Assembly (NCBI GenBank): GCA_977030845.1
Contig: OZ365116.1
Location: 20,398,001-20,462,000 of the forward strand
Reading direction: 5' to 3'
Source of the DNA: Fimbriosthenelais zetlandica
Taxonomy: Eukaryota
Length of the DNA stretch: 64,000 nt
Shown here: positions 2,488 through 54,484 of the stretch, one piece after another
How positions within the stretch are numbered: position 1 is the stretch's first letter
How the letters are laid out: the number at the start of each line of letters is the position of its first letter
Position numbers and translations under genes: made by a program
The notes under the pieces: model-generated
Told to the model about the DNA's origin: nothing
Databases searched by the model: none
The model's input: only the letters and a program-made list of their open reading frames with translations

Positions 2488-5400
2488 GTAAGTCACTCCT
2501 ATATACATTCTCACTTATTATAACGAAACAAAGTAAATTAAAATCATGATACTTTTCATGATATTTGTTATAACAGCCTAGTATATGTACCATGTATATG
2601 TGTCATCATTGTGTTTATGTCCTACACTAAAATACTGTGCATATTCTTCTTATCTATCCACGCCTATCTTGTTGAATACCCTTTGTCTTTTCGCATAGTC
2701 CTTGTAAAAATGTCTATATTAGAAATAAGGTTGTGGGACATACAGATAAGGCATTGGTGATCGATGTATAATATGTGCTTTGTACATTCAGTAGGTTATA
2801 CATACATGTTTGTTATATTTTAATTTCGGTCTTAATGTATGTACGACTGCTGCACGCTCTAGATACAATAAGTATTTTTTCTGTGCTTCTAAGTCACAGG
2901 GGATCCTCATATAAATTGTTGATAACTCAGGAAGTGTTGAGACTCCGCAGAACTGCGAGTGAATCGTGACTTAATCTACCCTACCCTCTATATAAACTCG
3001 GCATTTCCAAAACATTTTGACCTCAGCTCTATTCACTTCAGTAGAGCTTATAGTGAAAAAAGACCGTGAAGAGATTAGTAATAATTGTGCCAGAGTGTAT
3101 TTAAATACGCTTGACGTACTTCTCTTGCCTTTTTTAGGGAGTTCATACATTTTTAATTTCCCTATAAGACATGGTGGATTAAAACACCTCAGAACTATAG
3201 AATATATTTCCATCCCATGTAGCACAATGCTATTGATTAGGTATTGGGGTTCCATTTCACTGCTGTTCTGCCAATTGATAGTAGGCGAGGTCTGACATGA
3301 GGCTCTCTCTTCACTGCCTCCACCTGGTGTTATCTATTGAGACTTAAGCCACTATATCGGATCCAACTTGTATTTAAGAGTTGTAGGGATCCAAACCAGT
3401 TGGTTGGTATACATAGAGCTTTTGGTTGGTCTTTGATATTAACTGTCTAGTTCTCAGTTTATATCAGCCAGAATTGACATTTGTCTGAGAATGATCTTCT
3501 CTTATATATTTGTTATAAATTATCTTGAAACAATTACAAAAATTGGATACCAACATCCACAGAGACATAATTATACTGTGAGCTCAGACCATTCATCCCA
3601 TGTGACACACGTTATATTATGACCAAGTACTGTACCATCCCCAGGCAAATATATGGTGATTCTATACACTACGTCACATTATAGGTGAAGAGTAGACTCA
3701 CTCTCAACATATAATGTGTGGGATGGTGTGCTATAGTGGACACAAGTTGTCTTAGACTATATTCTCTACTGTACTACCTGGCACCAGTTACACACATACG
3801 CTATCAGTCCTTCCTCATCTGCTAGACACTGACCAACAAATAGCCAGTGGTCAAGTGTAGCTGGACATTGTGTCTCCCTCCCTGGGGAGTTGACCAGTAC
3901 AGTAGGATGGGTGATGGACATATCCCTGGCCCTCTTCACGATAATGGGCTTATTCAAAGAATGGAACATAAATCATTTGGAGAGGCTAAACTTTCTGGAA
4001 GCTCTAGTGTGAAAATGTGGAGGCTCAGGGTAGGTGCCAAGAATTGGTCCTTTCTTAAACTCATTTATACTTTCAATTTGGCTGGTATATTGCATGTAAT
4101 ATTTCGTGCTGGAATTCCGGAGAAATTTCTGTTCTGCTTTGTCTCTGTTAGAGATTTTGCCTTCATATGAGATTAAAATTCTCCTCAGGTATTTTACCAA
4201 ATTAAAAACTCTGGTCTTGACTGAGACTGACACTTACTGGCCTCGGTTTGTGTTATTGAGGACTGAGGACCATGTGTCTTTGTGTCTGACCACTACTGGT
4301 CATGACAAGTCTGACCTCACCCAGCAACATGGTCGCATGTACTGATTGAACTCTGCCTCATAATAATCAAATTATCATGAAATGCAGAGAAAACTTGTGC
4401 TTCTCCCTTTAAGTATGGACACACAGTTTCCTCCTATCGACAGTAGATATATAATATCATGTCATTCAGTCCTTGTTTCCTCTGCACATAAATACCCAGA
4501 AAACATGCATTGTATCACCAGTCATCAATCATTGAGCAACCTATTATATCACATAACCCATATAGCTGTCATTATCAGCAATCTCTCTACCCATCGGCAT
4601 CACTTTTTACCTGATTTTTTATTCACATAAATTGTATTTCATATAACATGAGATGTGCACCAGCTGCCTTCTACTGCTAGAGGGTTATCAACACATTATA
4701 ATCAACGCTATGACAAGGAGATGAGAGCTCAGATATTTCTCCTGCCTCCTGTCCCCCGGACCTGTCCCTGCGCTCCAATAGTAATCAGTTACTTTGTGTA
4801 TATTATACTATTTAGTTGGGTGACAATATGAGAGGCTTATTTACTGAGTTGTATATGCCCCGGGCATTCGTCACATTATGTAAATGTATGACCTGTCAGC
4901 CTTAAGTGGTGTTCTACTGCCGTCAGTGTCACTTAATTTACATATAATGCACTGTCAGGGATTAGCACACTGTCCCCTTGCCAAATGTTCATGTATTATT
5001 TGCCATTCTCTCCATGTTTTTTAAGTTATGTTTAAATTCTATCTAATTTCATTCTCCTCTTTCACAGTAAATTTTGACATAATCATTATACTGCCATGAC
5101 ATAGAACTAGACATAAATTTTGCTGGTTTATGATTTCACTAAACTACATGTAGATTTTGCATTATGTATAATTTAACCCTTTACTTTTCTGCTTTATTCC
5201 TGCTTTTCATTTATTTTCAATTTTGGATGGTTGAACAGCTTGGTATAGTTGAGGTCCATGCCCCTATGTATCCTGATAATGAATATCCCTCCACATGTCC
5301 CACCATGTCCACTTATTCACCCCCTCTTACCATGCCCCCTCCATCCTCACCCTGTCCCTCCCCTATAGCTCCTCCTCGTAGGCCCAAAAAACAACGTAAA

Positions 5401-17400: not shown

Positions 17401-20400
17401 TTGTAAGACTACCTTTTAGTGGTTGATTAATTGACTCCTTTCAATTAGTGTTGATGAGCTGCCAGCAACCTGCACCTGGTTCTTGCCTGAGTTCTTCTCA
17501 GGCTCGGAATTTTACAAATTTAAGACTTTGTTTGTTGTTTATTCTGGGCCATGCATCCAGCATATTGCCATCCTTAAGGATTTGCAAATTTTATTTACGA
17601 ATGAACAGCAAATGAATATCCGGAATTGGGCAAACTGAATATGGATTGTGGGAGGCAGACATTCCCAAGAGATTGCTTTCTTCATGTTGTCTGAGACGGA
17701 CTTGTGAATGTTTCAAACATGGCTGGCTTGAGGCGCGTGATAAAGCCAGTCTGCCAGGCTGAGGTTAATTTTCAAAAGCTGTTCCTCAGAGAAGAGAGTC
17801 AATAAAAAGATGCTGACTTCACTTAATGTAAAAGAAGGCTGGTCGTACCTGTCACTTGTGATAAGATAAAATAACACAATGCAAGGACTTAATGAATACT
17901 TCACCTGACTGAGACTACATCGCGTCCACATACGATCATAGCACTTATGTCCTTGTACATTAGTAACATCAGCCTGTACAATGCCCGGTGGACTCAGTAT
18001 GGCCAATTACAGCCGATTGCCAATGCTGATTACGCGGAGAAATCAGAGCTCCTCTCGCATACTGTGGGTAACTCAGCCTTTATTATTCATCCTCTGCGTG
18101 TGTGAACTCATCCCGCCTGATCACCCACTGAGATGAGGAAGAAGATTGCTTTGTTTCCCCAGGGATCACCCGATCATGAACGATTCCTTTACCTGAAGTC
18201 TGCAACCCACAACTTGATCCCCTCCTCATTCTCATCTCCAAGTCTCAAAGTCTCAATTTCATTTTACACAGTAAAAAAAAGCCTGCCTTTGATCCCTGGA
18301 TTTTAATGCAATTTTCTCATCTCAGAATAAAAGGTGCGTTGATAATGTACATGTGTGCAGCCTGCTCTTGCCCCTTCCAGCCATGTACATCTAATGTATA
18401 TCTTACATATACATGTTCCCCTCTTCACAGTGACTATGTCTCTCCTCTGGTGAGCCTTGTAAGCCAGCCTGTTCATTCTCCTACTTAACACCCAGCCTGG
18501 AACTATTCCAGCCTGTTATGTTGCTGTCATGTCTACCATTGGCTGAGGTATATACAGGAACAAGTCGTATAAGATACACTTTACAAGCCATATTTCTCCA
18601 CCACCAACTAATGCACCTCCAGCTCGCTAGCTCCACAGACCTCCATTACAAGTCCTGCCTTCTTTTTCTCCCTCTCTGGTAATTTTCTTCATTACCATTT
18701 GTCATGTTGCTCCGGTAGTTAATTAAAAGGTTTGGCAGGAATCCAGAGATTGACTAGTGTGCACAAGCATTTCTTGAAGAGGCCATGGAAAAGTCGTCTC
18801 GTATTGGAGACGGAATTTGTTCTGAGATGGTCTTTTTACCAGCTTGTTCGTGACTGGTGAAAAGAGGTATTTCTGATTCTCTAGATATGGGAAGATGAAG
18901 GAATCAGTAAGGCAGGATAATATGCTTGTAGCTCCTCAAACCTTGACAATCAGTCACAGTCCCTCTACATGGTTATCTCTAGCATGTCTCATGCTTAAAA
19001 CACGTCAGAGGAGACTGATTTCTATTTCGAAACTTAGATTATCTTACAAAATGATAATATCTTTAAGAAAGGCACACGAATCTAACCTTCTTTTCGTGAA
19101 AATTATCTAGTTTGAAACCAGATTTGAAACCAAAAGAATTTTCCATTCCTTATCAAGTTTTAAGCTGGTAGATTTCTTGATGCTCAGGCATCCATGTTGG
19201 TGTCATTATGAACAGTGCCTGGTGATGGGTTTTTCAATCCTGCTTCATTATGCCTTAAGTGTTTAAGTCCCTTAATCCTCGGAAAGTGATTTGGAATAAT
19301 GCACCGGCCCTAAGCTTCATTATGAGGAGAAAGCATCGTGAAAGAAACTTAATTTCTGATTCTGGAGGATAAAAATAATTCTTGTCAGTACTGCTGGAAT
19401 CAAATACCAGTTTCATCTTTGATGTTAATGATCGCTAATGCCATTATTTATAAACCTTGTGAACGAGAAAAATCCAATCAAATGACTTTTCCTTCAAAAG
19501 TCAACCCCATTGAAATGCCTCTTCCATATTCAAGCCGTGTGCCTCAGGCCGTACTTTCCGTGCAGAGAAGTGCAACCTCTTGTATTGATTTCCTTTGTTA
19601 AGCTTGATGTGAAAATGAACATGTAAATTTTTTGCCATAACAAATACTGAGGGTTTCAGAAAACCCATGTCACTATGAAGTACTGTGATGTCGACGTATC
19701 ACTGGTCGACTTTTTCCCCTCATCTACTCTCATATTTCATACGGCCCAGCTACCCCAGGCTCACATGTTGAGACTGTATTATGATGAGTATTGGCAAACA
19801 GATTTTTCTCTCTGCTCAGTGAATCGACATTGATGACGGATTTTGATCTGTGCCATATGTGTGAATCAATTTTATTGACGATTGATGCCATGAGCAATGC
19901 TCTCAGCGAGAGCTAAAACGCCTGAAGCCAGACAAGACCACATTAGATGAGAATACTATTTGTTACTCCCTCAGTCTATTCTTTACATTTACCCACACTT
20001 ATAGTAAATGGATCCTGAATATGTTTTAATCAGATTTTCTTACAGTTCCTGGGGCCTTGAATAGACTAACCCGAATTAAAGCAGCATTTTTATCCGGGAT
20101 ATATATAACCTTCACCTCTAGAATCTTTCATCATTTCTTGGGGATCCATATGTTTCTTTATATCTCCCTTAAATTAAGTACAATATTACTGTATGTTTTA
20201 CTGACTTTACCCATGGTTTTCCTTGCAGGAGAACCTGGCAAAGAAGCGGTCCCTGACCAAGCAGTCGACCATGCCCGAGCTGGCTGAGACTGTAGAGTCA
20301 GACACACCTAACACGCCATCATCCAGGCCAGGTGACTCCATGAATCACCACACAGACGGTCACCACACAGGAGGACTACCCCCTCCACTCCATCCTCCCG

Positions 20401-32400: not shown

Positions 32401-35400
32401 TCACTAGACAAGACTTTATTTTTAAGCCGAGTAGATGCTCGACAACTGAGCCTTAAAAATAGCAAGACCAAGTGCTTTAATGCTTATCTCGCCTGATGGC
32501 CCTCTGAAAGCATGTTAAAGGTTTGGTGCCTCAACATTTTCATGCTCTGTATTAGCAAGTCTGGTTTATGGAAGATTGGCCAGGGCATATTCTCAGTAAG
32601 AACATAATCTCCTCCATTGTTTTGAATTGGGAATGCATCAAGTAGATGGCAACCTTCACGTTCAAACTGTTGGGTCAGCAGCCAATATAAGGGTGTACTA
32701 TATAGGACAGTCGGGGGTATTAACCTAATACCTTCTGGATCCCTCGATGGATTAAGGATATATCTAGGGCAGTACTAGATGTTAATAGTATGTTAATCCC
32801 ATAAAAAACAAGGGTATGATAAAGTAGGATTATGTCAGGTCCATGTTAAAATATGTGTGATAGGAAAAGATTTATATCCAAAAAATTCTTCTATTCCTAG
32901 CTTAGTGATGGCTGTGCTCATTCTACCAAGAAACCAGACCTGCTGCTCACCGAATAAATGAGTGTGACATTCTGGTTGTGGCACAGAGGCGTGTTCACGG
33001 AATTAATTGATTTGTGGTCAGCTTGTCTATACTTCTCTCTTTCTCTCTTTTCAGTGGCGAACAATTCACAGACCAAGAAATCGAGGTAAGTTTCTTAACT
33101 ATATTCAGAATATCTAAGAAATAATGTGTATTTTACGTGTGCCTTTTAATCGATATCACTAGTCTGACCATGGGCATTCTCAGCACGAATCCTGATAGGG
33201 TATCTATTTATAACTTGTAATCCGTAGCTGCATGTAGTGCGTATTATAGATGACGGAAATTAGAACATTCTTCACGAGGCTGCTTTAATCAGTGGACCTT
33301 AATGACGTCACACGGCGTCTATGTCCAGGCTGGTGTTATCACGGCTGTGATTGAAGCTGACACATAGCCTGCCATCTATAGCCGACCATCCATAGCCGAG
33401 CTGCTCCACCACTGTCCCTCACCCCATCTATGAGCTCCCCCAGTAATGCGTCCCCTGGGTTTACACTGCCATTTACTCCTCTCACCATACTAGCACATCA
33501 GTAATTACCACCATTAATCACCAACAATTCATATATAGCTCAAACATTGTCCCTTCACAAGTCAGAAGTACTAAGGTTTTTTATACAATTCCTTTGAATT
33601 GAGGGACAATGTCTAATGGGCGACCTGAGTGCACCAAGGTATCAATAGACCTATATTGGGAATACGGTTGGGGGTCTAAGCCTATTTCCTCGTGTTCTGC
33701 CAGCTCAGGCTGTTGAAGCCCTTCCTCACCAGACTTAGGGTATCATAAGATCCATGGGCTGTCTCTAGGGTTATTACGTACCAAGATCTCTATTGACCAG
33801 GTCTCCCACCCCCCTGCCATACATGCCTACCCTCACACAGGTGCCTTCAGCCCTATATAAGGCCTTATTGATGGCCGACCTCATTGTCCTGCAGATCTAA
33901 ATCTACTGCTAGGAAATTGGTCACCAAGCTCATTATGATCCCGGGTGGGCGGTTACCTCGATTGCTTGCCTTTTACCATACACCTACTTTGCTCCCATTT
34001 CCTGCCAGCAAGGAACGGGACATGAAGCGAATCAATATATCATGCAACAAAAATAGAACCCATCTGACAAGAACAGTTCACGGTTCTCGTAAAAAACAAG
34101 TTGCATCTGCCCCAAGCCATCTCAGATTTAATGATAGATTTGTGGTGTGGACACTATGTGTACATTAGATTGCTGTAAAAATAGTATTTGCGTAGCTTTT
34201 ACATGTTCTATGAGCTACCCGATGAATTGCTGTCACTTTGAAATTTCAAACGGTGGCCGCCTCAGACCCATTGAGACTAGTGGGAGAGAGGCTTGAATGT
34301 GGCAGTATTACTGAGTCCAGACGTACACTATCAAATTGACCTTCATGGCCGTGTGTAAATTGCTGAGATTGGCGAGATAAAATGAAGTAAATGCCGACTG
34401 GTTTATTCTATTGATCTGCAGAATTCGTAAATATTTTAAGAAGCTTGGTTCACCTCGGGGTTAGAAAAACCTTTTAGGGACCTTTCCTGTGTACATATGC
34501 TGTAGAAGTTTGGTACATTAGATGGTGAACAGCTTTCAGCTTTGCCAGACGGTTAGGTTTTGATCGATGGGACTTTTAGATTGTTGTTGAATTGATTGAT
34601 CCATAACCAGTGGAGCATGCGCGTATTTTTACTCGGCATCAGCAAGTTTTCATCACATTACACTGGTCACGTTAGATAAATCCCCTCAAATCTCCACCCC
34701 ATAATCAGACACTGATGCCAAACCTACAGATACTTCCTTGGTCAAGATCGCTCTAACTCGCTGGCTCCATGCCCCCTGAAGCTGCCCATGTATGCTGCCG
34801 AGCCTGAAAGCAGACCCAAGCATTGTGAAAATAAGCAATTACCTATAATGCCTTCATCTTGAAGGAGATACTGACCACACGCTATCTTATATGGTCACTG
34901 GACATGATAAAAGTGACCATGCCCTCAGGGCCGGCTCCATTCCTATATTGTGGAAGCAGCGGATTGGAAATCTTTTAAAAAGTCCTATCTTTTATTGAAC
35001 CCTTTCTTATATCATCCATGGGCGCTGGTTTTCTCCCAGAAGTTTAACTTCTGAAACGAAACTTTGGTGATAACTAGTGTTCACTTTCATGAGATACGGA
35101 TGTATTTATTTCGAGACATGGCATAATGTTTCCCACAGGAGGCTTGTAAACTAATAGTCCAGGAATTGGGTTGATCCCTGGAGATCATGGAAAAAGAAAA
35201 GAATCGGCAATTTGTGACTGAAATGATTAGGGCTGATTTTGACTCAGAGCAGCTAAAAAAAGTCTGGAAATATTTATGAATAAATTGCATAAATAATTCC
35301 AGCCAGAGGAACGGGGAACTGCCATATTCCATAAGCAATTAATGTAAGAAAATCCCACTTTTCAAAATAGTATGACTACAGCACATGTATCAGGAACCGC

Positions 35401-38400: not shown

Positions 38401-41400
38401 GGGCTTAGGAGGTGCCTTTACTGGGAAAACCATGGCTTGTAGGAATGAGAAAAACAAGCCTTGTGGTCACATATAGTGACAGGGTGATGGGCGACCTGAC
38501 TCACTAGGCTCGTGGCTCAATAGCTTTAATGACATGTCTTTGTTTATGCTGAGAGAGTTTCTGTTACTTTGAGACTATCTCTCTTTTGTGAGGAGAGTTA
38601 GTGTCTTTGTCAGGCCCTGTGAGAAATGCGCATATTGATGTTTTCTCAGAACTTGTGTCGCTCGTCGAGTTCCTTATTTGGACTGGACGGGTTAGACTAA
38701 AACGTCTGACTTTGAGGAAGTCATCTTAGAGATCTAGACGAAACATTGGATCCGGATTAAAACAATTTTTTCGGGAGCAAAAAATTTGGTTAAGAATTTG
38801 ATACATTGATATAGATGTGTGTGGAAGGTGCCAACAAGTTGCTCATAAGATTACTTGCACTGTTTCATGTGTAATTTTCTTGAATTTTGTTCTTAGATTC
38901 TTCTTCTGATCATTTTCCTTTCTACTTTCAGGAAAAGTTCGCAAGTCTTGCACTGGCCTTCAAGACAGACAAGCTTACCCTTGAGAAGCGGATAGATCTC
39001 CATGAGCGAGCAAGAGACATTGCTGAGCAGAATGTCAACCGTGAAATTGATGGCCTCAAAGAAGCCATGAAGGTGGGTGAACTTTGGCAGGCGTAGAAAT
39101 GGGCCTGAAATCTTGTATTGTTAGTCTTTATAAGAGATAGAAGATACTGTTGATTATTTAATATATGTTTCAAGTATTTGCTTGCTATATTTATCAGATG
39201 CTTATAAGTCATGACACCAGGTCCTTTCTAAATGGTCTATATGGACTCCACTTTCACCATTGCTCTGAAAATTGGTTTTGACAGTTTTTCTTATTCGAGC
39301 TTTAAAGTCTGAGAAAAAATTTCCCAAAGTTGTAGCGATTTTCTGCAGTCATGAATAACAGACCCGAAGCCATGCGTGTTATAAAGTGATCTTCAATGTT
39401 AGCCAAATCCAACCCGTCCTCCTCCTTTTAAAAGTGAATTCTTTTCACTGAATGATTAAAGGATAACAAAAATGGCTTCCGCAATTACAGCTGGTGATAG
39501 ATAGTAAAAAAGATGAACTGCTTCCATGCATTAATCCAAACGAAGATTGCCACGTAAGGGAAAATCCAAGCCAGTCAGCCCTGGCTTAAAGCCTTCCTTA
39601 ATCATGTAAATCCCTCACAATGGAGACTACAGCAAAGTCATACACTGGTTCACACCATCAACATATACAAACATGTCCCCAATTTATTTACACTATTTGT
39701 AAAAAAAATTATATTGATCAAAGGAATGAAACTTTGGTTTATCTCACTTTCTCATTTATGACCATTTTTCACGGCAGGTTGAACTTGAGAAAGAAATTAA
39801 AGATAGGGAAGATGGCTGGAGGTATAAATGCTGCTTCTGCTGCCTTCACTCCCAACCATTAAGCTTATGTTGGTGGCGAATCAATAATCCACTTTGAGGC
39901 CGCGCTAATTGAATATGCTACAGGCTCCTGCATTGAAGACATTTATTTAATCACATATAAATTCCTATTTATGGATCAATATATTGTTTGAGCGATAAGG
40001 TTTTGAAATTAAACCGAGTCCTATCTTTGTGAAGCAGCATATAGTACCTTGGCTTTCTCTGCTTTGTTGGGAATATCCAATGTAGAGCTTGTTTCTTATA
40101 ATGTTCTCAGTAAAGAAAGAGATCGAAGCTGGCGATAAAAAGAAAATACTTTAATTTACGCTTCAACACGTCCAATTCATCATTGGATGGATGCTGCCAT
40201 TATGCGGCTTCTTTTACTGGGCTGAATGCCTTCGTTATAACTCAACAAGCACCATTCAAGCCCCAATGTAGGAATAGATTTTTTAATAGCCTTTAACACT
40301 TCCAGAATTCAAGAGTGCATTTTCAGGTGGGTCTGATCGACTTAAGCTCCAGAACTTGGAGGGAATAAGCCAATTATAGTAGCCGGAAGAGTCGATAAGG
40401 CCTTTGCCATATATATGTATTCCGTTGACAATCTTGTTATGGATTTATCTATGAAAATAATTGACGTACTGCAAGGTTCCTAGAAGAATATAGAATGGAC
40501 CGGGTATGAGCAGAGTGAAGATATAACTGCTGTTACTGCCGCTTACACCAAACTCTGTCCAAATATATGCTGCTCCCCGGTTATATGTCCATCACGTCCT
40601 CAATATGGACCACTTACATCAGAAATAAGCTGTAGTCTCCCACATACGAGATGGATCACAGCTAATGTGAGAGATGCCAATCAGGACTTCTAGATCTAGA
40701 TGCATATATCTTATAGACTTGTTTCCACCCTAGAAATCTAGTCTGAAATATTTGAGTCGCAAGTTTTGTCATAAAGAGCAAGAATATACCTTTCCTTTTG
40801 ACAAGTTTGCAGCCCCCCTCCCCCGAATATATTTCTAACCATCTTCTGACTAAATACCGTGTTGGCTGCAGTGGACACTGACATCAGAGATAAGAGATGG
40901 ATGCAGTTTGTCATTATTCCCTGCCATCATTGTGAAGGAGCTACTTTCAAGCCTCCTACCCTTTCGGTGCACTTAAAAGGAGAGCTGGCTTTTTATCACC
41001 AGTATATGGGTAAAGAGGATATCTTGTAGGCTGCTCTGTCATCCAAGCACCATCTCCAGCTGAGAACGATTAAAGACCATGTCCTCGTCACTTTGATGCA
41101 TCGTCTCAGGATATTGTGTGCTGATTTTTACTTGTGTCTCCCTGTCATTTCATCGTCTTCCCTGCTGCTAACCTACATCTGATAAGTCAGAAAGTAGCCT
41201 AAAGACCACCATCCTATAGAAGCCTTCCTACATCCTGCTAATTATAGTATAGCTTATATATATCATTGATCTTTTATCTGATGGTGTAATCAAAACCATA
41301 GAATGGTATTTTTGAACTGATGGTATCAACTGTGCATTGGCTGGTTGTAGGGGAGTGATATTGTGCTATAATCTAAGGCTTTATGATGAGTGAGCTGCTC

Positions 41401-44400: not shown

Positions 44401-47400
44401 AAAGCTCAAAAAAGCCTTTCAGCGAATTCTCAATTTTGTTATTGGAAAAGCAATAAAGACTTTCAAGGTGGAAAATTCAAGAAAGCCTCAATTGATTTCA
44501 GTCACATCAGTGTTTATAATGTTCTGAAACCTTGTGTCTTTTCAGGCTTTAAGTCCTTTCTGTACAAATGCAGCAAGTCGTGACATATATACCAAAGTAC
44601 AGCACCATGTGGAGGTACTAGAGCAGTCCACCTCCAGGGTCTCCTCCCGGGCAGAAGTCCACGGAGCCGTCCAACAGGTGAGTACACGCATTATCAATCA
44701 TTAGTAAAGGTAGAGGCTGTGTATGCAGTCCTTGTTAGCATTATACTAACAAACTGCCACAGCTTGAGAATCATCATTAATATTGAGAACTTAAATAACA
44801 CGGTCAGGTGACTTCTGGTAAGACCTTTGCTCGTCCTTGTTCATTACATCATTTTGTTGAACTCCTGTGTTCTTCCTCCTCCTCCTGTTGGGGCTTGTTT
44901 TTCCTTCTCCCCATCCCCTCTCCACCTTCTGCTGTTTCTCTGAGATTAATGGAATGGATCTTGATCTTCACGCTGCGTAAATCCCCAACAATCCCCTGAG
45001 GTGCTGGCACTGTCTTTTAGAAATCGTTGTGAAATTCCTCCTTTTTCCCCTTTTTTTTCTTCTCTTTTTCCATGGCGGCATGGAGATCTTTTTGAAGACA
45101 TTCCTGTTCTTAAGTGTGAATTCATTGATGGAAAAGGTCTTGAAACAAAAGAGTGTTGTATGAATAATAGATTTTTGCTCAGACTCTTCCCTTCTACAAT
45201 GAGTGTGTTTCAAGCAGGCTTTCAGGGGGGCCTTCATTTACTTGTGAATATGACACCTTTATAGTAGGAAGTCGTCCCTCATCTATTCCGTGCCTAGTCA
45301 CCAAGCTGTTTAAATATGTATGGATTGTGCTAATTGTGACTGTCTTTCTATGCTACTGCAGGAACTGCGAATGAGTAAAGCAATTGAAGTAATGGTAAAT
45401 CATGTGGAAAACCTAAAGCGTTTACACGACAAAGAACACCTAGAATTAGAGGAAACAAGGTGGGTTTATAACTACCTCTTCATCAAATATTCACTGATAC
45501 CTTATGATATATTTCTGTAGATCTCTCTCGGAACATATCGATACTTCAATATTCTTTTTACTTTTATTTTTCCAGAAAACTTTTAACTGAAAATAAGGTG
45601 ATAGGCCAAAATGCAGATGGTGAGTATGATGTATTGAATATGATATTTATTAACATTTATTTCCATCAACATTTCAAAATATCTTAATCTTGATTTATAA
45701 TTTATGAAACATTGTCTTGTTGCAGGTGATGGCCTTCAGAAACGATCATATTCTTTAGCTGGTGGTGGTGGACTCAAGGTATGTGTGTCTCACTCTTGAT
45801 TAATATAGTTTTGTCTTTAATGTTTATATTAAGGTATAACATGATTAGATATATCAAAATCTAATCTATATAATCAACCACTATAGCAACCATAATAGCC
45901 AGAATGTAATGTACACTCCACATGCATTCAGGAGATTCCATCGTTCCCTCGGAGGGACCATTAATAACAAAAATTACTTCACATCCGATGGCTTCAGTCG
46001 GAAGAAACTTAATACTAACGAAGGGGATTATTTTTCTGCGTGGCAGAGAATCATTTTTAAGATCCAGGGATTAGTAAATGGTAGTGACAAAGAGAAATGT
46101 AAATAGTAATTGGCTTGAATTCAATGCGTTGGGTTTAGTTTTATCTTTCGAGGAAAACGTATTGCCAGTGGTAATTGAAGATTTAATGCTGACAGTACAG
46201 CACAGGAATTGGAGTAGGGAGATCTGTATGGCTTGTAGAAAAGATGGTGGCAGTGTCAGTTATTGCTGCCTGCTATTCATTCTGTCTCGCTGCCTTTGGT
46301 ATAAGACCTTACATTGCCTGCATGGAGCTCCCGTGAACTGCCTTTCATCATCCGTCTCCAGCTTAATGCTGTCACTAATCTCAAGTTGACATTCACTCAG
46401 CTGCACACAGGAAAGACTTTATACTTTTACTCCATCAAAGCCAGAACCGATTTCCACCAACTTTTGATGCTATTAAGGGCATGTTAGGATCTGGTACAGG
46501 CGAGCTTGTCAAATGATGAATGTACTTGTGCTACATATCAATCTTATGATATAGGGCCTTCCCATGTTCCCATCTATACACTGATTTATATCCCTGTTTA
46601 TATTCTCCAATTATCTAATACGTATTGGAAATTCAAAATGTCCCCGTAGGCATTAAAAGAAAATGGTTTCTATAACTGAAAGTGAAGTTGTAATATCCAT
46701 TGTGACCTGAGCAGTAGAGCATTGTGGGGTTCTGCTGCAGGCACATGTGAACTGCTGGGATCCACTCTATCTCACAGTGATAGACAGTTTATAGGCCATG
46801 GGTAGTAGACCCATACCTCAACAACAAGAAACTCTACCTTCCCTTCAGGAAGGTCACCTTCAGCTAGTCAAGATATTTATAACATCCCTCAAGACAATAC
46901 CATGGTCGCTAAACATGGACCAAAGCAACTTTAGTGTCCTTTAGTATCTTCAGGTAGTTAATAAGGATTTTGGGAATTGAAGCTAGTGTGAATTTTCTTA
47001 TTAAAATGGCTCTATTCACTATGGACTGTCTGAGATTCGTCCATATTTTCATAAGAAAATGCATTGAATATTCCTCTGCTCAATATCTCGGGTAACATTG
47101 TATTATTCCTTGTCCGTTTGTATTCATAATAAAATACTATTGCACTAATACTGCTTTATATAGAGCAGAACAGACATTCATTTTGGAGTATGGATTGTGA
47201 GTGATTGTAGTGAAGGAAGATGAGATCTGAACTATAAACTGACAGTTATTTTACAGGCATTCCATTCTATGAATTATCAATTATGTGATCTGTATTAATG
47301 ATTTGTTCTCGTTAATTTGATGCATTGACATTTCTGTTTCATCTGCATATATCTATGTGTATTTTAGTGAGGTGTATTTTGGTTTTCACAATACACATAT

Positions 47401-50400: not shown

Positions 50401-53400
50401 GCACCTGTGGTTCACAAATATTAGACCCCTGTTCACACACATTTAGATAGAAGTTAGACGCAATATTGTAAGGAAGATTTGACGTCTTTCTCATCCTGCA
50501 TAATGCAGGAGGAGATCTCAATGCTATGCTTTAATTTGAGCTGAATAAATTATGTTGATTAGCTCAATACTATAATCCTCTACCCGACTATTCTCCTATT
50601 GCTCATAGACCAAAACATACTGCATTGCTTTGAATTAAGCACACTGTTAAATATATTGGTTCAGTTTGATAAGTTCTATTCTTTTATTAATTAAGTTGAT
50701 GATTGTTTTCAGCTGGGAGGAAGACGTCGCGCGAGCGTAGCAGTATTCCCGAGAAAACTGAGCACACTGGGGGCGGGGTCTAGCGGCCTCGCTCCCGATC
50801 CACCCATGGTCAGTATCCACTCATTATTTATAGTGATTATTTGGAGGTTCTTGTCTTATATTTTGTTTGATTGCACTTAATGCTCTCATGGCAGTTTATA
50901 GTGCCCTTCACGCTGCTTTCAGTTGTCACAGATATATGACAGGTTGAGATGTATTAACTCTAGCAGGATGCAGTATACATGTATAGACTATCAGGAAAGT
51001 AGGATAATTAAGATTATCCAACTTACATTTTATACAATTATTGAGCTACGATAGAGGATATACCCAATGCAGAGCAACATATATTTCTATCATAATTGAA
51101 ATTATGATGTGACTTTTTCGAAGATGTTTTGGCTTCAGTAAAATGTAAATGTCTCTTTAAAAGTGTATCAGATTTAGACTCTTTAGATGTCTGGTCTTGT
51201 TCACGGAAAAGAGAATGAATAACTTTTAGAATAAAAGCCCCAGGTTGTAGTTCCATACTGCTAGTGTTAACATTTCATCCCATTCTTGCATCCACTTGCC
51301 AAACCTGCAGGAACAAAGGCCCTAGTATTAACCAGTAGAGTGAGGTAAGGGTCCCCCAACACGCTTCTGTCAGTGTATCAACTTTCATTGCCATCTTTTG
51401 TATCATATTTTGTATGATTTTGCTGGTTTATGGGTACTACTTTATGTTGTGATAACTCAATCTCATTCCTTATGTACAGTACGTGGATTTAGTCCTTCAT
51501 TCTTTGCAAGATATTTTATTTGTGTAACCCCGTAGTCTTGGAGTCGTATCGTAGTTCTTTCATATTTTACTTTCTAGGATTTCAGGGGTTCAGGGGGCTC
51601 CCAACATGCACCAGTTACCTTAGCTTAAACCCATTCACAACTATTTTTTTCATTTTTTTAATATATATTTTTTATCAGAATATTGAAAATAATGGATCGT
51701 TGCCTAATATTGTGTTAACAGCCGTCCACCAGTTCTTCTCCATCTCCACATTTGGCGAGTGATGAGGAGGTATATATTACTATGTGTGAAACAGATCCCC
51801 TTTTGATGATGGAATGCGGATTTTAGTTTGTGTGTGAATATTTAGAGTTTAAGACCAAGGATACAAATAGTCAATTTAACGTTGTGCTGGTCTTTTGCCC
51901 AAAAAAACCCTGATTCCCTATCATCAAAAAGTAATTCATAAAGTAAATTTTAATATTATGACGTATAAATTGATATCATATGGATTTCCAAAGAAAAGCA
52001 ACTGAGTTGAAATCCTTCCAGTTCCTTCTACTATCCTGATTTAGAACAGGCCCTATTGTTGTAGAACTTCCTGAGAATTAATTCTACAGTCCAGTTTGAT
52101 TCCTGTTTTCCATCTTGGTTGATTACCCTACTTCTGTAGGATTGATCTGTTGCATGCTGTGCCCAGTCAAGTGAATATGTGGGCCGGTTGTTCTTCAAAA
52201 GAACTTAATGACTTCGATCTTTACCTGAATCAAAACTTTTAAATCTGTTAAATGTCCTCTATTACATGCTTGTATATTTCCTCCTGATATTTGTATTCAC
52301 TTGGCTCGTGCGTTCTGTCCTGTTCTTAATATGAATTTAATCTCCCTGGGCTGTCTGACTTTTTTCTGTCTGACTTTCGACTTCGTTCAATTTAGAAATT
52401 TAACAATATAACCGAGAGAAATTTCCTTGATTTGATCGCCTCCAATGGAAACTATTAAACTGTTTTTGCCTTCACTGTCGAGGATAAATGCTTGAGTTAT
52501 AGGAAATGCAAGATGTCTATCCTAACCCATTGTTGTTGCTCATGTTTCAGGACCCCAAAACTAGATTTCAAACTCTCGTAGCCGATACTGCCATTAAAAC
52601 AAGTGTGGTGGAGCAATTACGTAGGTCAGTCTCCATCGACCGCCAACCTGTCAGACCTACAACTCTTCTAGATCTGAAAGGCAACACTAGTCTCAGGTGA
52701 GACCTCTTACCCCACTTTACAATCCCGACATTAATGTTATTCCAGTATTTATATTATGGTATTTATTTATATATGATGCTATTTTTATTTCCAGAAAATT
52801 GGATGGTAAAGTGAATGTCCAAACCACTGTGGTTCATGAAAATGGTAATAATGGTGGAAAAAGTAAATTAGATTCCAATAGTAACATCGACCAAGAAGCA
52901 GTCTTTCAAAAAGGGTAAGTATTTATAACTGTCGCTTAATGGAACCTTATTTTGAATGGCAGTTTCGATTGCAATTCACATGGAAATGGATGGCCTTTCT
53001 TGATAACTTGTAGTCAGATGTAATTGAGCATTTGGCTCACGGCTTTAAAAGCTTTAAAATGAATGTTGCTATTAACTTGATTTTACCAGAGGATGTGTGA
53101 AGGTCGATTGTTTAATAAAAGGCCCCTAACATCAAAATTGACAATCAAGGAAAGTTAATGGCCCTTCATCTTGGTGCCTGGCGCCCTGAGGGCCTTTTAA
53201 TTTTCAAGCAGGGCCAGAAATTAACCATAAAGTTCAGGGTATTAAACAAGTTCTTTGTCTAAGGTGATTTTGCTACAAGCTACCCATATTTTATCTTAAA
53301 GATCACATTAAATTAAAAACCTAATGGCTTCCTAAATCTTTGACTTGTGAAAGCCTTGAGTTGACAGTGAGTTTGTGACTTCGTCCTGAGTCAGACTACG

Positions 53401-54484
53401 TATGTAGGGCCTTCATGCTAGTGTTTATTATTCAGGTACGAGGAAGGGATTCGTGCCAAAATAGGAGCCGAGCTATCAGACCTGCGGCAGCAGCAACGCT
53501 CATTTTATGACAGCCTAGAGAACCTCATCGACCAGAATGAAGTCTCTGACGAGGAGGAACAGAAGTAAGTAGTGCCTTGATTAGGCATTGCCTGGTCTTA
53601 TATTGGCTGCCAGTAAAGCCTTAATGTTCTCATAGAATCTTAACATATTCTTACATCTAAAAATAGGCCTATCTCACAGTATGACAATGCTTCTATAAGG
53701 CCTTGGCCTTGGATGCATAATCTGGGTGTTGATAAGTAGCGTGGAATTATTTTTTATGCCATGCTACTCGTGCGTATATATTAAATCTTGAATTGGCTGG
53801 GTAAATCGTCTACCTCTGCTTTTCGATCTTTTTGTCGTTCTAAGCGTGCGTTCGGCGAGTTTTTTTTCCAAAAGTTTTGACATCGCGCTCAAGATGGTGG
53901 TGGAGGAATCAATAGTCCCGATGCGAGTGATTAATTCTGAAGCATGGCATAAAAATAAAGCCAAACTCGGGTTACATACACTTGTAGGGACCACTAAATT
54001 TGAAATTAGGTCGCATGCCATTTGTGAAAGAGGATATGAGGGCTTTTAGATAATGACTACAGGTGTCTGTATCCCTCATTTGGCTCAGTCTTAGTAAGCA
54101 CCCTCAGTAGAAGTTTACATTGTAGATGTAGCACATTGATATATGTGACTATGTGACATTGTAGATGTAGCACATTGATATATGTGACTATGTGACATTG
54201 TAGATGTAGCACATTGATATATGTGACTATGTTACAGACTGGAGCCGTCCTGGGTGGAGCTGGTGTGGCAGCTCTGGCCTGGCTGGTCCTCGTCTGGTAA
54301 GAGGCTCCGCCTGGCGTTAGCTGGCTTCGTCTTCATGCTGGCCTTCCTCAGCCTCATTCTAACTCTGGTACCGGTGAGCCGAGCCACGGAACGTCACCAC
54401 CACCCCATCACCTGGCACTCCATGAAAAACTACATCAAAACATACACACACATACATCGAGAAGAAAGGGGCGCCCCCACTTGA
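2327..54484 (+). CDS. IRAG1/IRAG2-like: IRAG/MRVI1/LRMP-family gene (IP3R-associated tail-anchored ER/nuclear-envelope protein), 16 exons in window, 5' end upstream of window
   Basis: join(2327-2487,5239-5421,5968-8118,11731-11868,20229-20533,33055-33085,38932-39072,44546-44677,45362-45459,45576-45619,45726-45778,50713-50808,52551-52696,52795-52914,53436-53564,54238-54484). All junctions are GT-AG and phase-compatible. The core FTDQEIE-EKFASLALAFKTDKLTLEKRIDLHERARDIAEQNV...[32 protein letters not shown] matches the MRVI1/LRMP coiled coil as recalled. Confidence 0.92.
2990..4400 (-). mobile_element. Decayed CR1/L2-like LINE RT relic
   Basis: QKFLRNSST (like QHGFRxxRST), DHWLFVGQCLAD (like LGPLLFLIYIND) and a C-terminal SFF motif, in the expected order. 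Confidence 0.4.
5239..5421 (+). CDS. IRAG1/IRAG2-like: IRAG-like candidate cassette exon B, Pro-rich (LGIVEVHAP...PIAPPRRPKKQRKSYTTLGQ)
   Basis: Donor CAG|gtatgt at 5421/5422; acceptor gaacag after a long pyrimidine tract; 183 nt, phase 0-0. Start uncertain (alternative acceptor at 5067, in-frame ATG at 5227). Confidence 0.6.
5968..8118 (+). CDS. IRAG1/IRAG2-like: IRAG-like giant exon C (717 codons, low complexity/disordered)
   Basis: Inside the 752-aa ORF 5950-8208; branch-like gactaat plus ttttacccag acceptor, donor CAG|gtcagt at 8118/8119; phase 0-0. Confidence 0.8.
8880..9650 (-). mobile_element. Decayed L2/CR1-like LINE relic
   Basis: LNKIQKR-AIRV-like and GAEWN motifs of the LINE ORF2 C-terminus; IIPIP...ELWVKACNRFIY resembles the RT N-terminal region. 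Confidence 0.35.
11101..11160. repeat. 25-bp tandem repeat x2.4
   Basis: CCATCCATRCCAACAAATCCATCCT x2 plus a partial copy. Confidence 0.9.
11731..11868 (+). CDS. IRAG1/IRAG2-like: IRAG-like exon D (GDTDKSDVKETSPK...INVPLSKIRE)
   Basis: Acceptor tttaccacag, donor GAG|gtatgt, 138 nt, phase 0-0. Confidence 0.75.
12050..12500 (+). mobile_element. Decayed CR1-like LINE C-terminal fragment
   Basis: VYYQHIWNPCSRQHA (like LEYxxxVWNPxxxxxI). Confidence 0.3.
13300..13900 (+). mobile_element. Decayed RTE-like LINE reverse transcriptase
   Basis: EYVYLG...DVDVVRRI (about 13690-13745) and a frameshifted GVRQG/LFNIYxDWV-like segment at about 13475-13550. Confidence 0.5.
20229..20533 (+). CDS. IRAG1/IRAG2-like: IRAG-like exon E (ENLAKKRSLTKQSTMPE...AFPSLPDDTLKQLGL...Q)
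   Basis: Acceptor ttttccttgcag, donor CT|gtacgt (phase 2); FPSLPDDTLKQLGL resembles the IRAG1 MPNISDVLLRKLRV motif before the coiled coil (recalled). Confidence 0.85.
21530..21672. repeat. 38-bp tandem repeat x4, alternating A/B units
   Basis: TTTAATCAGGCCAATAG... alternates with TTTAGTCAGGGCAATAG... Confidence 0.92.
22780..23000. repeat. Polypyrimidine low-complexity tract including C15 (22897-22911)
   Basis: Direct inspection; similar CT-rich tracts at about 8180-8340, 43150-43440 and 58860-59120. Confidence 0.8.
24790..25770 (-). mobile_element. Second decayed Gypsy-like integrase fragment
   Basis: LHDEH...AKLWPGM (like LHxxH...YWPGM) followed by ITSPHYP (like TSSPYYPQSNG). Confidence 0.35.
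27200..30270 (-). mobile_element. Highly decayed Gypsy/Ty3 pol relic (RT-RNaseH-integrase order)
   Basis: Minus-strand fragments in Gypsy order: MDYGEIKR...KLPHI (like VDYRxLN...PLPRI, about 29700), GAKVLYGN (like RNaseH YLYG, about 28480), LILP...GCHDVERVTT (integrase Zn region, about 27800), SVHHQLGNLVRR (like PYHPQGNGLVER, about 27230). Many stops; no LTRs recognised. Confidence 0.55.
32143..32202. repeat. Perfect 30-bp tandem duplication
   Basis: AAACCAGAATACGAATTAGTGGTATTCTAA x2. Confidence 0.95.
33055..33085 (+). CDS. IRAG1/IRAG2-like: IRAG-like 31-nt microexon F (GEQFTDQEIE)
   Basis: Strong acceptor cttctctctttctctcttttcag, donor GAG|gtaagt; bridges phase 2 to phase 0 and supplies the LTEKEVE-equivalent motif. 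Confidence 0.88.
33303..33310. promoter_or_regulatory. Full palindromic CRE (TGACGTCA)
   Basis: Exact 8-mer in a locally CpG-rich intron patch; could be chance. Confidence 0.25.
35080..35360 (+). mobile_element. Decayed CR1-like RT fragment
   Basis: IYFETWHNVSHRRL-CKL (like IYLDFxKAFDxVxHxRLLxKL), then NRQFV and GELPYSISN. Confidence 0.4.
38932..39072 (+). CDS. IRAG1/IRAG2-like: IRAG-like exon G, coiled coil (EKFASLALAFKTDKLTLEKR...KEAMK)
   Basis: Acceptor tttctactttcag, donor AAG|gtgggt; hallmark LxLAFxxDxxTLExR motif. Confidence 0.95.
40250..40520 (+). mobile_element. Decayed LINE RT fragment
   Basis: VGLIDLSS and TYCKVPRRI*NGP (like TCGVPQGSILGP). Confidence 0.3.
41800..42040 (-). mobile_element. 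Decayed RTE-like RT fragment
   Basis: KAFHPLGS...TNLEA weakly resembles KFxYLGS...RIAKA. Confidence 0.25.
44546..44677 (+). CDS. IRAG1/IRAG2-like: IRAG-like exon H (ALSPFCTN...[21 protein letters not shown])
   Basis: Not in the supplied ORF track; acceptor tgtgtcttttcag, donor CAG|gtgagt; SSRAEVxGAVxQ hallmark. Confidence 0.93.
45362..45459 (+). CDS. IRAG1/IRAG2-like: IRAG-like exon I ([32 protein letters not shown])
   Basis: Acceptor ctactgcag, donor AG|gtgggt (phase 2); MSKAxEVMxxHVENLKR hallmark. Confidence 0.95.
45576..45619 (+). CDS. IRAG1/IRAG2-like: IRAG-like exon J (RKLLTENKVIGQNAD)
   Basis: Acceptor ttttatttttccag, donor G|gtgagt; phase 2 to 1; 116-nt intron upstream. Confidence 0.85.
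45726..45778 (+). CDS. IRAG1/IRAG2-like: IRAG-like exon K (GDGLQKRSYSLAGGGGLK)
   Basis: Acceptor tcttgttgcag, donor AAG|gtatgt; phase 1 to 0. Confidence 0.85.
50713..50808 (+). CDS. IRAG1/IRAG2-like: IRAG-like exon L (LGGRRRASVAVFPRKLS...DPPM)
   Basis: Acceptor ttgttttcag, donor ATG|gtcagt; RRRASVAV resembles IRAG1 RRRVSVAV (recalled). Confidence 0.9.
51000..52220 (-). mobile_element. Decayed L2/Crack-like LINE relic
   Basis: PRWKTGIKL (like WKxAxVxP) upstream of RHLKSLNLIHF*RDIY (like PLFKSLNLLKLxDIY). Confidence 0.35.
52551..52696 (+). CDS. IRAG1/IRAG2-like: IRAG-like exon M (DPKTRFQTLVAD...KGNTSL)
   Basis: Acceptor catgtttcag, donor AG|gtgaga (phase 2); an equally in-phase donor lies at 52624/52625. 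Confidence 0.8.
52795..52914 (+). CDS. IRAG1/IRAG2-like: IRAG-like exon N (RKLDGKVNVQ...DQEAVFQK)
   Basis: Acceptor tttttatttccag, donor GG|gtaagt; phase 2-2. Confidence 0.85.
53436..53564 (+). CDS. IRAG1/IRAG2-like: IRAG-like exon O (GYEEGIRAKIGAELSDLRQQQ...DEEEQ)
   Basis: Acceptor ttattattcag, donor AA|gtaagt; the joined FQKGYEEG resembles the IRAG1 YSKGFQEG motif (recalled). Confidence 0.88.
53764..54021 (-). mobile_element. LINE RT fragment, CpG-rich
   Basis: ILSAMSKLLEKKLAER (like ILxxxSKLLEKxVxxR, the motif after NYRPIS). Confidence 0.35.
54117..54233. repeat. 39-bp tandem repeat x3 abutting the terminal-exon acceptor
   Basis: ACATTGTAGATGTAGCACATTGATATATGTGACTATGTG, near-perfect copies; the last ends TATGTT followed by ACAG. 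Confidence 0.97.
54238..54484 (+). CDS. IRAG1/IRAG2-like: IRAG-like terminal exon P: TM helix (about 54311-54376) plus 35-aa KASH-like tail ending RGAPT*
   Basis: Acceptor gttacag, phase 2; hydrophobic LALAGFVFMLAFLSLILTLVPV after basic KRLR; TGA at 54482-54484. Confidence 0.9.

Follow-up and report, generated by a model that had tools for sequence, protein, structure and literature searches.

An IRAG/LRMP family gene in Fimbriosthenelais zetlandica with a degenerate-looking nuclear-envelope tail motif

The locus and its exons

The window analysed here, 64,000 nucleotides of contig OZ365116.1 from F. zetlandica, holds a real invertebrate gene of the IRAG/LRMP family. In a homology-guided model, twelve exons on the + strand (20229-54484) are joined through GT-AG borders and consistent phases into a single open frame, and the gene appears to extend further upstream. 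The features of the window are as follows.

About 6050 to 8118, + strand: candidate giant exon of about 690 codons inside the open frame 5950-8208 (752 codons); joining to the gene presumed
11731 to 11868, + strand: exon ending ...FRINVPLSKIRE, then ENLAKK; AG/GT borders, phase 0
20229 to 20533, + strand: exon with the conserved MPELAE and FPSLPDDTLKQLGL motifs; tblastn (Owenia, Tubulanus, Pecten, Mytilus) and alignment
33055 to 33085, + strand: mini-exon of 31 bases encoding (L)GEQFTDQEIE; conserved L[ST]EQE[LIV]E before EKF in relatives
38932 to 39072, + strand: first MRVI1 coiled-coil exon (EKFASLALAFKTDKLTLEKR...); Pfam PF05781 match at 38932-39069 (4.7e-12; 45.8 bits), 244 database relatives
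44546 to 44677, + strand: second MRVI1 coiled-coil exon; Pfam match at 44537-44683 (29.7 bits), tblastn
45362 to 45459, + strand: third MRVI1 coiled-coil exon (ELRMSKAIEVMVNHVENLKRLH...); Pfam match at 45353-45466 (1.5e-13; 50.7 bits)
45576 to 45619, + strand: small exon, (R)KLLTENKVIGQNADG; tblastn (Ptychodera, Tubulanus), phases consistent
45726 to 45778, + strand: exon with candidate PKG site 1, KRSYS (RSYS codons 45743-45754)
50713 to 50808, + strand: exon with candidate PKG site 2, GRRRASVAVFPR (RRRAS codons 50722-50736)
52551 to 52696, + strand: exon DPKTRFQTLVADTAIK...RRSVSIDRQ...; tblastn (Owenia, Sinanodonta, Pecten, Mytilus), phases consistent
52795 to 52914, + strand: exon ending ...IDQEAVFQKG, the conserved EE.FQKG of relatives; acceptor tttccag, donor GG/gtaagt
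53436 to 53564, + strand: exon YEEGIRAKIGAELSDLRQQQ..., which completes KGYEEG; tblastn, more than 15 relatives
54117 to 54236, no strand: tandem repeat of a 39-base unit, 3.1 copies; TRF score 233, 98% matches
54238 to 54484, + strand: last exon, with the basic pre-anchor GKRLR, membrane helix, luminal tail and stop; tblastn (Pecten, Ptychodera, Tubulanus) and hydropathy

The splice model bears out the initial annotation in placing the MRVI1 coiled coil, the RSYS and RRRAS sites, the KGYEEG motif and a transmembrane helix in one spliced reading frame, all on the + strand and with the frame intact. Two of the exons, 33055-33085 (the mini-exon) and 52795-52914, were absent from the simple homology map and were then added to the model. 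The mini-exon, located by relaxed tblastn, follows a polypyrimidine acceptor, precedes a gtaagt donor and is in phase with the exons on either side. The length of exon 52795-52914 is a multiple of 3, so that it could be skipped with the frame intact. The KGYEEG motif is interrupted in the DNA and arises only when this exon (...AVFQKG) is spliced to exon 53436-53564 (YEEG...), the Gly codon of KG/YEEG being divided GG/G by the junction. Exon 20229-20533, which is probably the "exon P" of the initial annotation, carries a lineage-specific Pro/His-rich insert and a strong donor (ACT/gtacgt). The 39-base tandem repeat adjoins the acceptor of the last exon, and a Pfam search of the open reading frames at 58-63 kb gave no matches.

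Two exons upstream of position 20229 appear from their sequences to be part of the same gene, which would then outrun the span first reported. The motif of exon 11731-11868 matches QKLSKLREEH of IRAG1 and PLSKLWEEN of Ptychodera in the alignment. The giant exon, which has a high content of Ser, Pro, Arg and Lys and looks disordered, has a donor (CAG/GTCAGT) at 8118 in phase 0 that fits the acceptor at 11731, and its acceptor at 6050 is phase-compatible with an upstream exon ending at window position -7005. Its place in the gene resembles that of the S/P-rich stretch that follows the docking motif in IRAG1; Pfam and BLAST searches with the open frame 5950-8208 returned no relatives. When sequencing runs were searched with the coiled-coil exons and with the giant exon, no run was listed for either.

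All three coiled-coil exons score above the PF05781 gathering cut-off of 27 bits. The gene is apparently single-copy, since the only MRVI1 matches in the whole genome sit in this locus. Over the three exons (124 aa) the coiled coil is 64% identical to that of Owenia, 49-52% identical to IRAG2 and 43-44% identical to IRAG1.

Upstream exons, candidate kinase sites and the luminal tail

Colinear exons on the same strand, reaching as far as 60 kb upstream, encode what looks like a KASH5-type EF-hand with its coiled coil, along with a homologue of the PKG-Iβ docking segment of IRAG1.

C27:20337856-20338280 (contig coordinates), same strand: EF-hand_9 (PF14658), two adjacent exons with 26 and 22 bits, covering profile 2-32 and 38-66
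C27:20340088-20340237 (contig coordinates), same strand: KASH_CCD (PF14662), next exon, 24 bits, partial
Window -7161 to -7005, outside the window, same strand: PKG-Iβ docking-segment homologue (SEADK...RHKSRRLRK), 47% identity to echidna IRAG1, E 8e-5

EF-hand_9 and KASH_CCD are the best Pfam families for their exons, each exon alone falling below the Pfam cut-offs (37 and 43.3, respectively). These exons lie 58-60 kb upstream and are colinear with the long forms of Ptychodera, Argopecten, a tick and a teleost, and the conserved pieces keep the order that they have in Ptychodera (residues 433, 486, 1247, 1486, 1759 and 2164). According to Pfam, EF-hand_9, KASH_CCD and MRVI1 occur in a single protein in hemichordates, a scallop and teleost (Salarias) LRMP, while a tick protein and sturgeon IRAG1 and IRAG2 combine KASH_CCD with MRVI1. 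A KASH5-like N-terminal domain, which the initial annotation had proposed looking for, appears upstream on the same strand in the form of these sub-cut-off matches, and by way of these exons the gene probably corresponds to KASH5 as well. The docking segment corresponds to residues 152-184 of bovine IRAG1, a mapping that assumes that bat numbering equals bovine numbering, as it does at Ser696. Its homologue here keeps the second basic cluster (RHKSRRLRK) and not the first (KKK in IRAG1), and beyond IRAG1 the segment has been found, to date, in this locus and in its hemichordate and Tubulanus (nemertean) relatives only.

The two candidate PKG sites, KRSYS and GRRRAS, follow the coiled coil. Their exons have GT-AG borders, and in the alignment the sites fall, 16 residues apart, in the columns of human IRAG1 RSMS664 and RRVS677. 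In human IRAG1 the former is a PKG-I site and the latter the functional PKG site (PMC10298018). Most invertebrates have KRSMS at site 1, while site 2 aligns with RRRVSVAVVPK of IRAG1 and RRVSIAAIPR of IRAG2. The initial annotation had held that vertebrates split the PKG sites from the KASH tail. This does not agree with IRAG2, which is also an IP3R binder and a KASH protein and has sites homologous to those of IRAG1, RSAS363 and RRVT375 (PMC10298018); the RRR[AV]S site is kept in the IRAG2 of fish, frog and finch/penguin, and site 1 is gone from non-mammalian IRAG2 in the alignment. Since IRAG2 keeps PKG-type sites together with a KASH tail, the combination is better regarded as an ancestral state that IRAG2 retains than as a peculiarity of this gene.

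The last exon encodes GKRLR, a single membrane helix of 22 residues (LALAGFVFMLAFLSLILTLVPV, 54311-54376; maximum KD19 2.6) and a luminal tail of 35 residues (54377-54481) followed by a stop, a layout predicted from hydropathy to give a tail-anchored type II arrangement. The tail directly follows the transmembrane domain at the C-terminus of the protein, as a KASH tail does, and its length lies within the 9-40 residues, or up to 60 in an animal search, given for KASH tails (Zhou et al. 2014, PMC4050730). It also shares homology with LRMP/KASH-type tails in relatives (hemichordate, IRAG2), most of which end in xPPx and three in PAQ or SAQ. The KASH-like tail described in the initial annotation stands as to layout and homology. 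The protein ends, however, in GAPT and not in PPPX, and so lacks the PP pair of the animal KASH end pattern for the last four residues, [PATHQL]PP[QTVFILM] (PMC4050730). There is a single Pro, and one residue is inserted by comparison with the hemichordate tails. Its last three residues, APT, fit [VAPIL]PT, the pattern in which SUN-binding plant KASH tails end (PMC4050730).

The Pfam profile for MRVI1 supported the assignment of the coiled coil, as given above, while the Pfam KASH profile (PF10541) did not match the tail at E values up to 10; Salarias and finch IRAG2 tails likewise lack a match, as do all the family tails searched, and the profile discriminates poorly in this subfamily. Searching close relatives with the last exon gave no match, the matching locus of the nearest relative (82-89% identity) covering one exon only, and the tail had no match among PDB sequences. 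A search for another possible last exon, one ending in PPx, was also negative. To judge from its residues, the nuclear-envelope tail motif is weakened or degenerate in F. zetlandica. Because the tail ends in GAPT instead of xPPx, it is uncertain whether SUN binding persists in F. zetlandica, and we put the chance of this somewhat below even. The LINC attachment at the nuclear envelope proposed in the initial annotation is accordingly doubtful here.

Orthology and alternative explanations

In a maximum likelihood tree, the vertebrate IRAG1 and IRAG2 sequences formed separate clades (each 100/100) that were joined at 96/94 against all invertebrates, and the gene fell outside both, grouped with an annelid and a nemertean within an invertebrate topology that is congruent with the taxa. 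Each sampled invertebrate had one lineage-congruent sequence. The proposal of a pre-duplication type of gene is favoured by this tree and left short of proof by AU tests, in which neither the placement with the IRAG1 clade (p 0.106) nor that with the IRAG2 clade (p 0.092) was rejected. We conclude, with a probability of about 0.7, that the gene is the invertebrate pro-orthologue of vertebrate IRAG1 and IRAG2/LRMP and that the 3' half of a single large gene lies in the window. In human, KASH5, IRAG1 and IRAG2 lie at 19q13.33, 11p15.4 and 12p12.1, suggesting one set of paralogous regions from the vertebrate genome duplications.

It is possible to read the locus in other ways. A pseudogene, or open frames brought together by chance, is hardly credible, as the thirteen exons with homology support (11731-54484) are in frame, have canonical splice sites and encode motifs conserved across phyla. 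There might instead be two transcription units, with the EF-hand and coiled-coil exons forming a separate KASH5-like gene or belonging to rare transcripts, and the IRAG-like part giving a short protein from an internal promoter. RefSeq does list short isoforms among the relatives as well as long ones (Argopecten, 421 aa and 1711 aa; Mytilus, 472 aa; Pecten, 884 aa), and few exons were mapped between -57 kb and -14.6 kb. A search from -66 kb to +64 kb found no second anchor-plus-tail exon, however, the one at 54238 being the only one on the + strand, so that a separate KASH5-like gene would be anchorless; the conserved pieces also keep the Ptychodera order, and a chance KASH_CCD match on the same strand within 100 kb has a roughly estimated p of about 0.003 (29 matches genome-wide). 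We consider two units unlikely, if still a reading to be taken seriously. Considerably less probable is hidden paralogy, in which the gene would be orthologous to one vertebrate paralogue, most plausibly IRAG2, after a pre-bilaterian split with losses elsewhere. The greater identity of the coiled coil to IRAG2 and the AU tests would allow it, whereas the joining of IRAG1 and IRAG2 in the tree, the one lineage-congruent sequence per sampled invertebrate and the mixture of IRAG1-specific features (site 1, docking-segment homologue) with an IRAG2-specific one (the tail) argue against it.

The explanation that comes closest to an even chance, while falling short of it, concerns the product rather than the ancestry of the gene: an ER-only scaffold like IRAG1 that has lost SUN binding and regulates the IP3 receptor under PKG control, with no LINC role. 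The GAPT end, the single Pro, the one-residue insertion and the mismatch to the animal KASH end pattern all point this way, and the family offers precedents for loss of the motif in vertebrate IRAG1 (...QHEQPTEQ) and in the three relatives ending in PAQ or SAQ. Set against this are the retained length of the tail, its W...[HR] spacing and terminal Pro-Thr, the fit of APT to a SUN-binding plant end, and the dynein-adaptor-type exons upstream, which would be of little use without anchoring at the nuclear envelope.

Taking the gene as a pro-orthologue with the upstream exons included, a possible mechanism may be drawn by analogy with vertebrate work. A tail anchor would hold the protein in the ER and outer nuclear membrane, with most of the chain facing the cytosol; the coiled coil, conserved here in sequence, would oligomerise and bind the IP3 receptor, and cGMP-dependent kinase, perhaps docked on the upstream SEADK...RHKSRRLRK segment, would phosphorylate KRSYS and RRRAS and so tune Ca2+ release. 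A long isoform would add the KASH5-type EF-hand and coiled coil for recruitment of dynein. In its boldest form, which we regard as rather improbable, a single protein would combine the dynein-recruiting module, PKG docking and phosphosites, the IP3R-binding coiled coil and a SUN-binding tail, such that dynein-driven movement of nuclei or chromosomes at the nuclear envelope would be under the direct control of cGMP/PKG and local Ca2+ release, with KASH5, IRAG1 and IRAG2 having arisen from this ancestral form as three subfunctionalised copies.

KASH5 acts in meiotic chromosome movement, IRAG1 in the NO/cGMP control of Ca2+ release, and IRAG2/LRMP on IP3R, HCN4 and nuclear shape, and the three are studied by separate research communities. 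One gene here unites features that in vertebrates are spread over IRAG1, IRAG2/LRMP and probably KASH5. Taken with its relatives in hemichordates, molluscs and a tick, the locus points to an ancestral arrangement in which a single bilaterian gene already held the module of EF-hand and coiled coil, the MRVI1 coiled coil and its PKG sites, and a tail ending in PP. This provides a concrete ancestral model for the division of functions among three vertebrate genes, and invertebrate systems for testing a link between cGMP/Ca2+ signalling and motor coupling at the nuclear envelope. The added value of the gene itself is modest, consisting of an extra orthologue and a degenerate tail motif. Within the literature searched, KASH5 has been tied to fish Fue/Lrmp only (PMC3787381), and no description of an invertebrate relative was found.

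Comparison with known systems

The gene is an added orthologue in a known family, and similar predicted genes are already present in other invertebrate genomes, including Owenia fusiformis CAH1798827, Ptychodera flava XP_070540468, Argopecten irradians XP_069102190, the Mytilus "IRAG1-like" XP_052086965 and Strigamia T1JNL7, a "KASH5-like coiled-coil domain-containing protein". These share the exon-by-exon homology, the sites and the anchor, Owenia being the nearest in the coiled coil, and differ in that most end in xPPx. They are automatic annotations, and no description of them was found in the literature searched.

Among vertebrate proteins, Fue/Lrmp (zebrafish Futile cycle) and the teleost long LRMP (Salarias fasciatus A0A672HFN4) carry the EF-hand, coiled coil, MRVI1, RRVS, anchor and short luminal tail in one chain (Pfam; Horn et al. 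2013, PMC3787381), whereas the joining of the upstream exons here is deduced from colinearity. Fue/Lrmp ends in ...RHNGQPPV instead of GAPT, and the docking-segment homologue and site 1 (RSxS) of this gene were not found in teleost (Salarias) LRMP. IRAG2 (LRMP, Jaw1) resembles the gene in its MRVI1 coiled coil, RRVS-type site and tail-anchored topology, and the tails are homologous (SW...LLWPYTGLRHNG[PQ]PPV in IRAG2, ITWHSMKNYIKTYTHIHREERGAPT in this gene). The xPPV end of IRAG2 goes with KASH behaviour established by experiment (PMC3787381, PMC10298018), in contrast to the GAPT found here, and IRAG2 has no stable PKG-Iβ docking site (PMC10298018). Vertebrate IRAG1 (MRVI1) shares the coiled coil, both sites (RSMS/RRRVS against RSYS/RRRAS), the C-terminal anchor, the LSKLREE, MPELSE and KGYQEG motifs and homology in the bovine 152-184 segment; it differs in the lower identity of its coiled coil and in its own tail without a PP end, and tetrapod IRAG1 lacks the EF-hand and KASH_CCD, part of the latter being retained in sturgeon IRAG1. 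The likeness to KASH5 (CCDC155) was seen with the Pfam profiles EF-hand_9 and KASH_CCD; KASH5 has no MRVI1 region, and here its module would form the N-terminus of a far longer protein.

Exon structure of the gene

The assembly comprises 447 Mb in 79 contigs, and the window has a G+C content of about 40% with no gaps. The MRVI1 coiled coil (PF05781) was matched in three exons (38932-39069, 44537-44683 and 45353-45466), and a Pfam profile search of the whole genome gave no MRVI1 match elsewhere, making this locus its sole source. A phmmer search of 1.8 billion proteins returned 244 relatives for one exon; full-length sequences most like that of this gene occur in Owenia fusiformis (an annelid), Tubulanus (a nemertean), molluscs and hemichordates. 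Exons were mapped by tblastn with long relatives, and their borders were then set by splice signals and phase. The span 20229-54484 contains twelve exons, with AG/GT borders throughout and a single open frame to the stop.

Mapped features within the window
5950-8208, + strand, open frame of 752 codons; a phase-0 donor at 8118 fits exon 11731
20229-20533, + strand, exon, begins at an acceptor
33055-33085, + strand, exon
38932-39072, + strand, exon, MRVI1 match
44546-44677, + strand, exon, MRVI1 match
45362-45459, + strand, exon, MRVI1 match
45576-45619, + strand, exon
45726-45778, + strand, exon containing RSYS
50713-50808, + strand, exon containing RRRAS
52551-52696, + strand, exon
52795-52914, + strand, exon, 5' side of the KGYEEG junction
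53436-53564, + strand, exon, 3' side of the KGYEEG junction
54238-54484, + strand, last exon, with anchor, tail and stop

The motifs reported in the initial annotation were recovered. RSYS (45743) and RRRAS (50722) both lie inside exons, and the transmembrane helix corresponds to an anchor, LALAGFVFMLAFLSLILTLVPV, at 54311-54376, followed by 35 residues ending in GAPT. KGYEEG is absent from the unspliced genomic DNA and is made only by the junction 52914/53436, which splits the Gly codon, so the splicing proposed earlier is correct. A 39-base tandem repeat at 54117-54236 (3.1 copies, 98% matches) stops 2 bases before the last exon, and its final copy provides the polypyrimidine/AG acceptor region of that exon.

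In relatives, LSK[LI]R[EQ] directly precedes ENLAKK. A motif of this type with a GT donor is present at 11851-11868, at the end of an exon at 11731-11868. Exon 20229 begins at an acceptor, and the gene appears to be larger than first described. Ser, Pro, Arg and Lys are abundant in the product of the frame at 5950-8208, which contains many RRxS-type motifs and has no detectable relatives; the frame is probably a very large disordered exon belonging to this gene. Two further forward-strand frames between mapped exons, one acidic (EEQEEEEDV..., window -323 to 24, contig positions 20397677-20398024) and one Pro-rich (5164-5445), gave no similarity and may be extra exons. The interval 58000-60000 is a G+C-rich patch (0.49 versus about 0.40) in which both strands have Pro-rich open frames; Pfam gave no matches there, and the next gene may begin in this patch.

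Candidate KASH5-type exons and a possible docking-segment homologue

Because zebrafish Fue/Lrmp has a KASH5-like N-terminus (Horn et al. 2013, PMC3787381), we scanned the relatives with Pfam. EF-hand_9 (PF14658), KASH_CCD (PF14662) and MRVI1 occur in one protein in Ptychodera, Saccoglossus, Argopecten and a teleost (Salarias) LRMP, and KASH_CCD with MRVI1 in a tick and in sturgeon IRAG1 and IRAG2. The Acipenser sinensis proteins (database sequences P0124 and P0236) keep a partial KASH_CCD, at 93 and 53 bits, which suggests that both vertebrate paralogues inherited the KASH5-type coiled coil before its loss in tetrapods. The genome itself has a forward-strand KASH_CCD match 58 kb before the window begins, and in the 100 kb examined upstream the exons are colinear with the long relatives.

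Mapped features upstream of the window
-60192 to -59694, + strand, EF-hand exons; EF-hand_9 ranks first among Pfam families in each (profile 2-32 and 38-66, 26 and 22 bits)
-57912 to -57763, + strand, KASH_CCD exon, 24 bits
-14.58 kb, -10.1 to -9.1 kb and -8.2 kb, + strand, conserved pieces colinear with long relatives
-7161 to -7005, + strand, exon reading EGKKVDLVSGSLEEVELSEADKLLNTQLLDEARKTSDESRHKSRRLRK

Candidate exons for the KASH5-like N-terminal domain that the initial annotation suggested looking for therefore lie upstream, and from strand and colinearity they are probably joined to the MRVI1 exons. Between -66 kb and +64 kb the forward strand has no other exon with an anchor and short tail, so an independent upstream KASH5-like gene would be without an anchor. 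Upstream of the EF-hand exons, a 359-codon minus-strand frame (window -78787 to -77711, contig ~20319214-20320290) is a different gene and helps to show where the locus stops on its 5' side.

The exon at -7161 to -7005 matches Ptychodera residues 1486-1521 at 67% identity and echidna IRAG1 residues 80-128 at 47%. The PKG-Iβ docking segment is bovine IRAG1 residues 152-184 (PMC10298018). As the RRRVS serine of bat IRAG1 is residue 696, equal to the bovine numbering (PMC10298018), this segment corresponds to exactly the conserved piece, of which the homologue here keeps the second basic cluster but not the first.

Candidate phosphorylation sites, phylogeny and tail

In a MAFFT alignment KRSYS (site 1) aligns to IRAG1 SRSMS, and GRRRASVAVFPR (site 2) to IRAG1 PRRRVSVAVVPK. 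The PKG-I sites of human IRAG1 are RSMS664 and RRVS677, and IRAG2 has the homologous RSAS363 and RRVT375 (PMC10298018), so vertebrates do not, as had been assumed, separate the PKG sites from the KASH tail. Site 2 is kept in nearly all family members, including fish, frog and finch/penguin IRAG2, and site 1 is found in IRAG1 and most invertebrates. Given this distribution and the IRAG2 homologues, both sites are, on the alignment, ancestral family features not specific to IRAG1.

In a tree of 29 sequences and 508 columns (IQ-TREE, LG+C20), IRAG1 and IRAG2 each form a clade (100/100) and jointly make up one side of a 96/94 branch opposite all invertebrates, among which molluscs, arthropods and hemichordates each come out as groups and Owenia and Tubulanus neighbour our gene. 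This topology places the gene outside the vertebrate clades, as a pro-orthologue should be, and fits an IRAG1/IRAG2 duplication on the vertebrate stem; forcing the gene beside IRAG1 or IRAG2 lowered the likelihood by 16-19 units, although AU tests rejected neither nesting (p 0.106 and 0.092). Coiled-coil identity is 49-52% to IRAG2 versus 43-44% to IRAG1.

Tails of relatives after the anchor mostly end in xPPx, an end that vertebrate IRAG1 has lost (...GLQHEQPTEQ).

Tail ends of relatives
Hemichordates, ...SWTSLSELLWPHTSIRHSAPPPQ
IRAG2, ...SWMTIQQLLWPYTGLRHNGQPPV
Ticks, PPPT
Molluscs, HPPL, QPPS, VPPV, RPPT
Owenia, APPS
Tubulanus, KPPT

The tail of our gene, HPITWHSMKNYIKTYTHIHREERGAPT, aligns to these with one extra residue and keeps one proline. 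It resembles a KASH tail in two of the three traits used by Zhou et al. 2014 (PMC4050730), position directly after the transmembrane domain and acceptable length, but GAPT does not match the animal end pattern [PATHQL]PP[QTVFILM]; APT alone fits the plant pattern [VAPIL]PT. No other terminal exon with a PPx end was found downstream of the last exon. Pfam KASH matched none of the family tails tested, bona fide IRAG2 tails included, and thus says little for this subfamily. Judged by its end, SUN binding by this tail is doubtful, and the case for an all-in-one molecule is at its weakest here. Some Argopecten irradians isoforms (P0162 and P0163) add six residues to the ...HPPL tail of P0038, giving ...HPPLLMAATV; with this extension the motif would no longer lie at the terminus but be buried, possibly as an isoform switch for SUN binding.

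Comparison with known family members

The sequence is best read as a single gene, about 115 kb long, that corresponds in invertebrates to IRAG1 and IRAG2 and probably to KASH5 as well. Going by vertebrate work, its product would be a tail-anchored protein of the ER/outer nuclear membrane whose coiled coil would bind IP3R and whose PKG sites would be phosphorylated, and the long isoform would add a dynein-adaptor-type N-terminus. The gene probably also makes short isoforms from internal promoters, as RefSeq predicts such forms in scallop and mussel. The idea of a pre-duplication molecule combining these roles thus appears largely sound, and KASH5 can be added to it, while its vertebrate premise and this species' tail do not bear it out.

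The invertebrate orthologues are automatic database predictions only, and our literature search found no paper on invertebrate members and none tying KASH5 to IRAG1 apart from PMC10298018. Published work already covers the family, the behaviour of LRMP as a KASH protein and the homologous phosphosites that IRAG1 and IRAG2 share (PMC10298018, PMC3787381), as well as the Fue/Lrmp of fish, a fusion carrying a KASH5-like N-terminus (PMC3787381).
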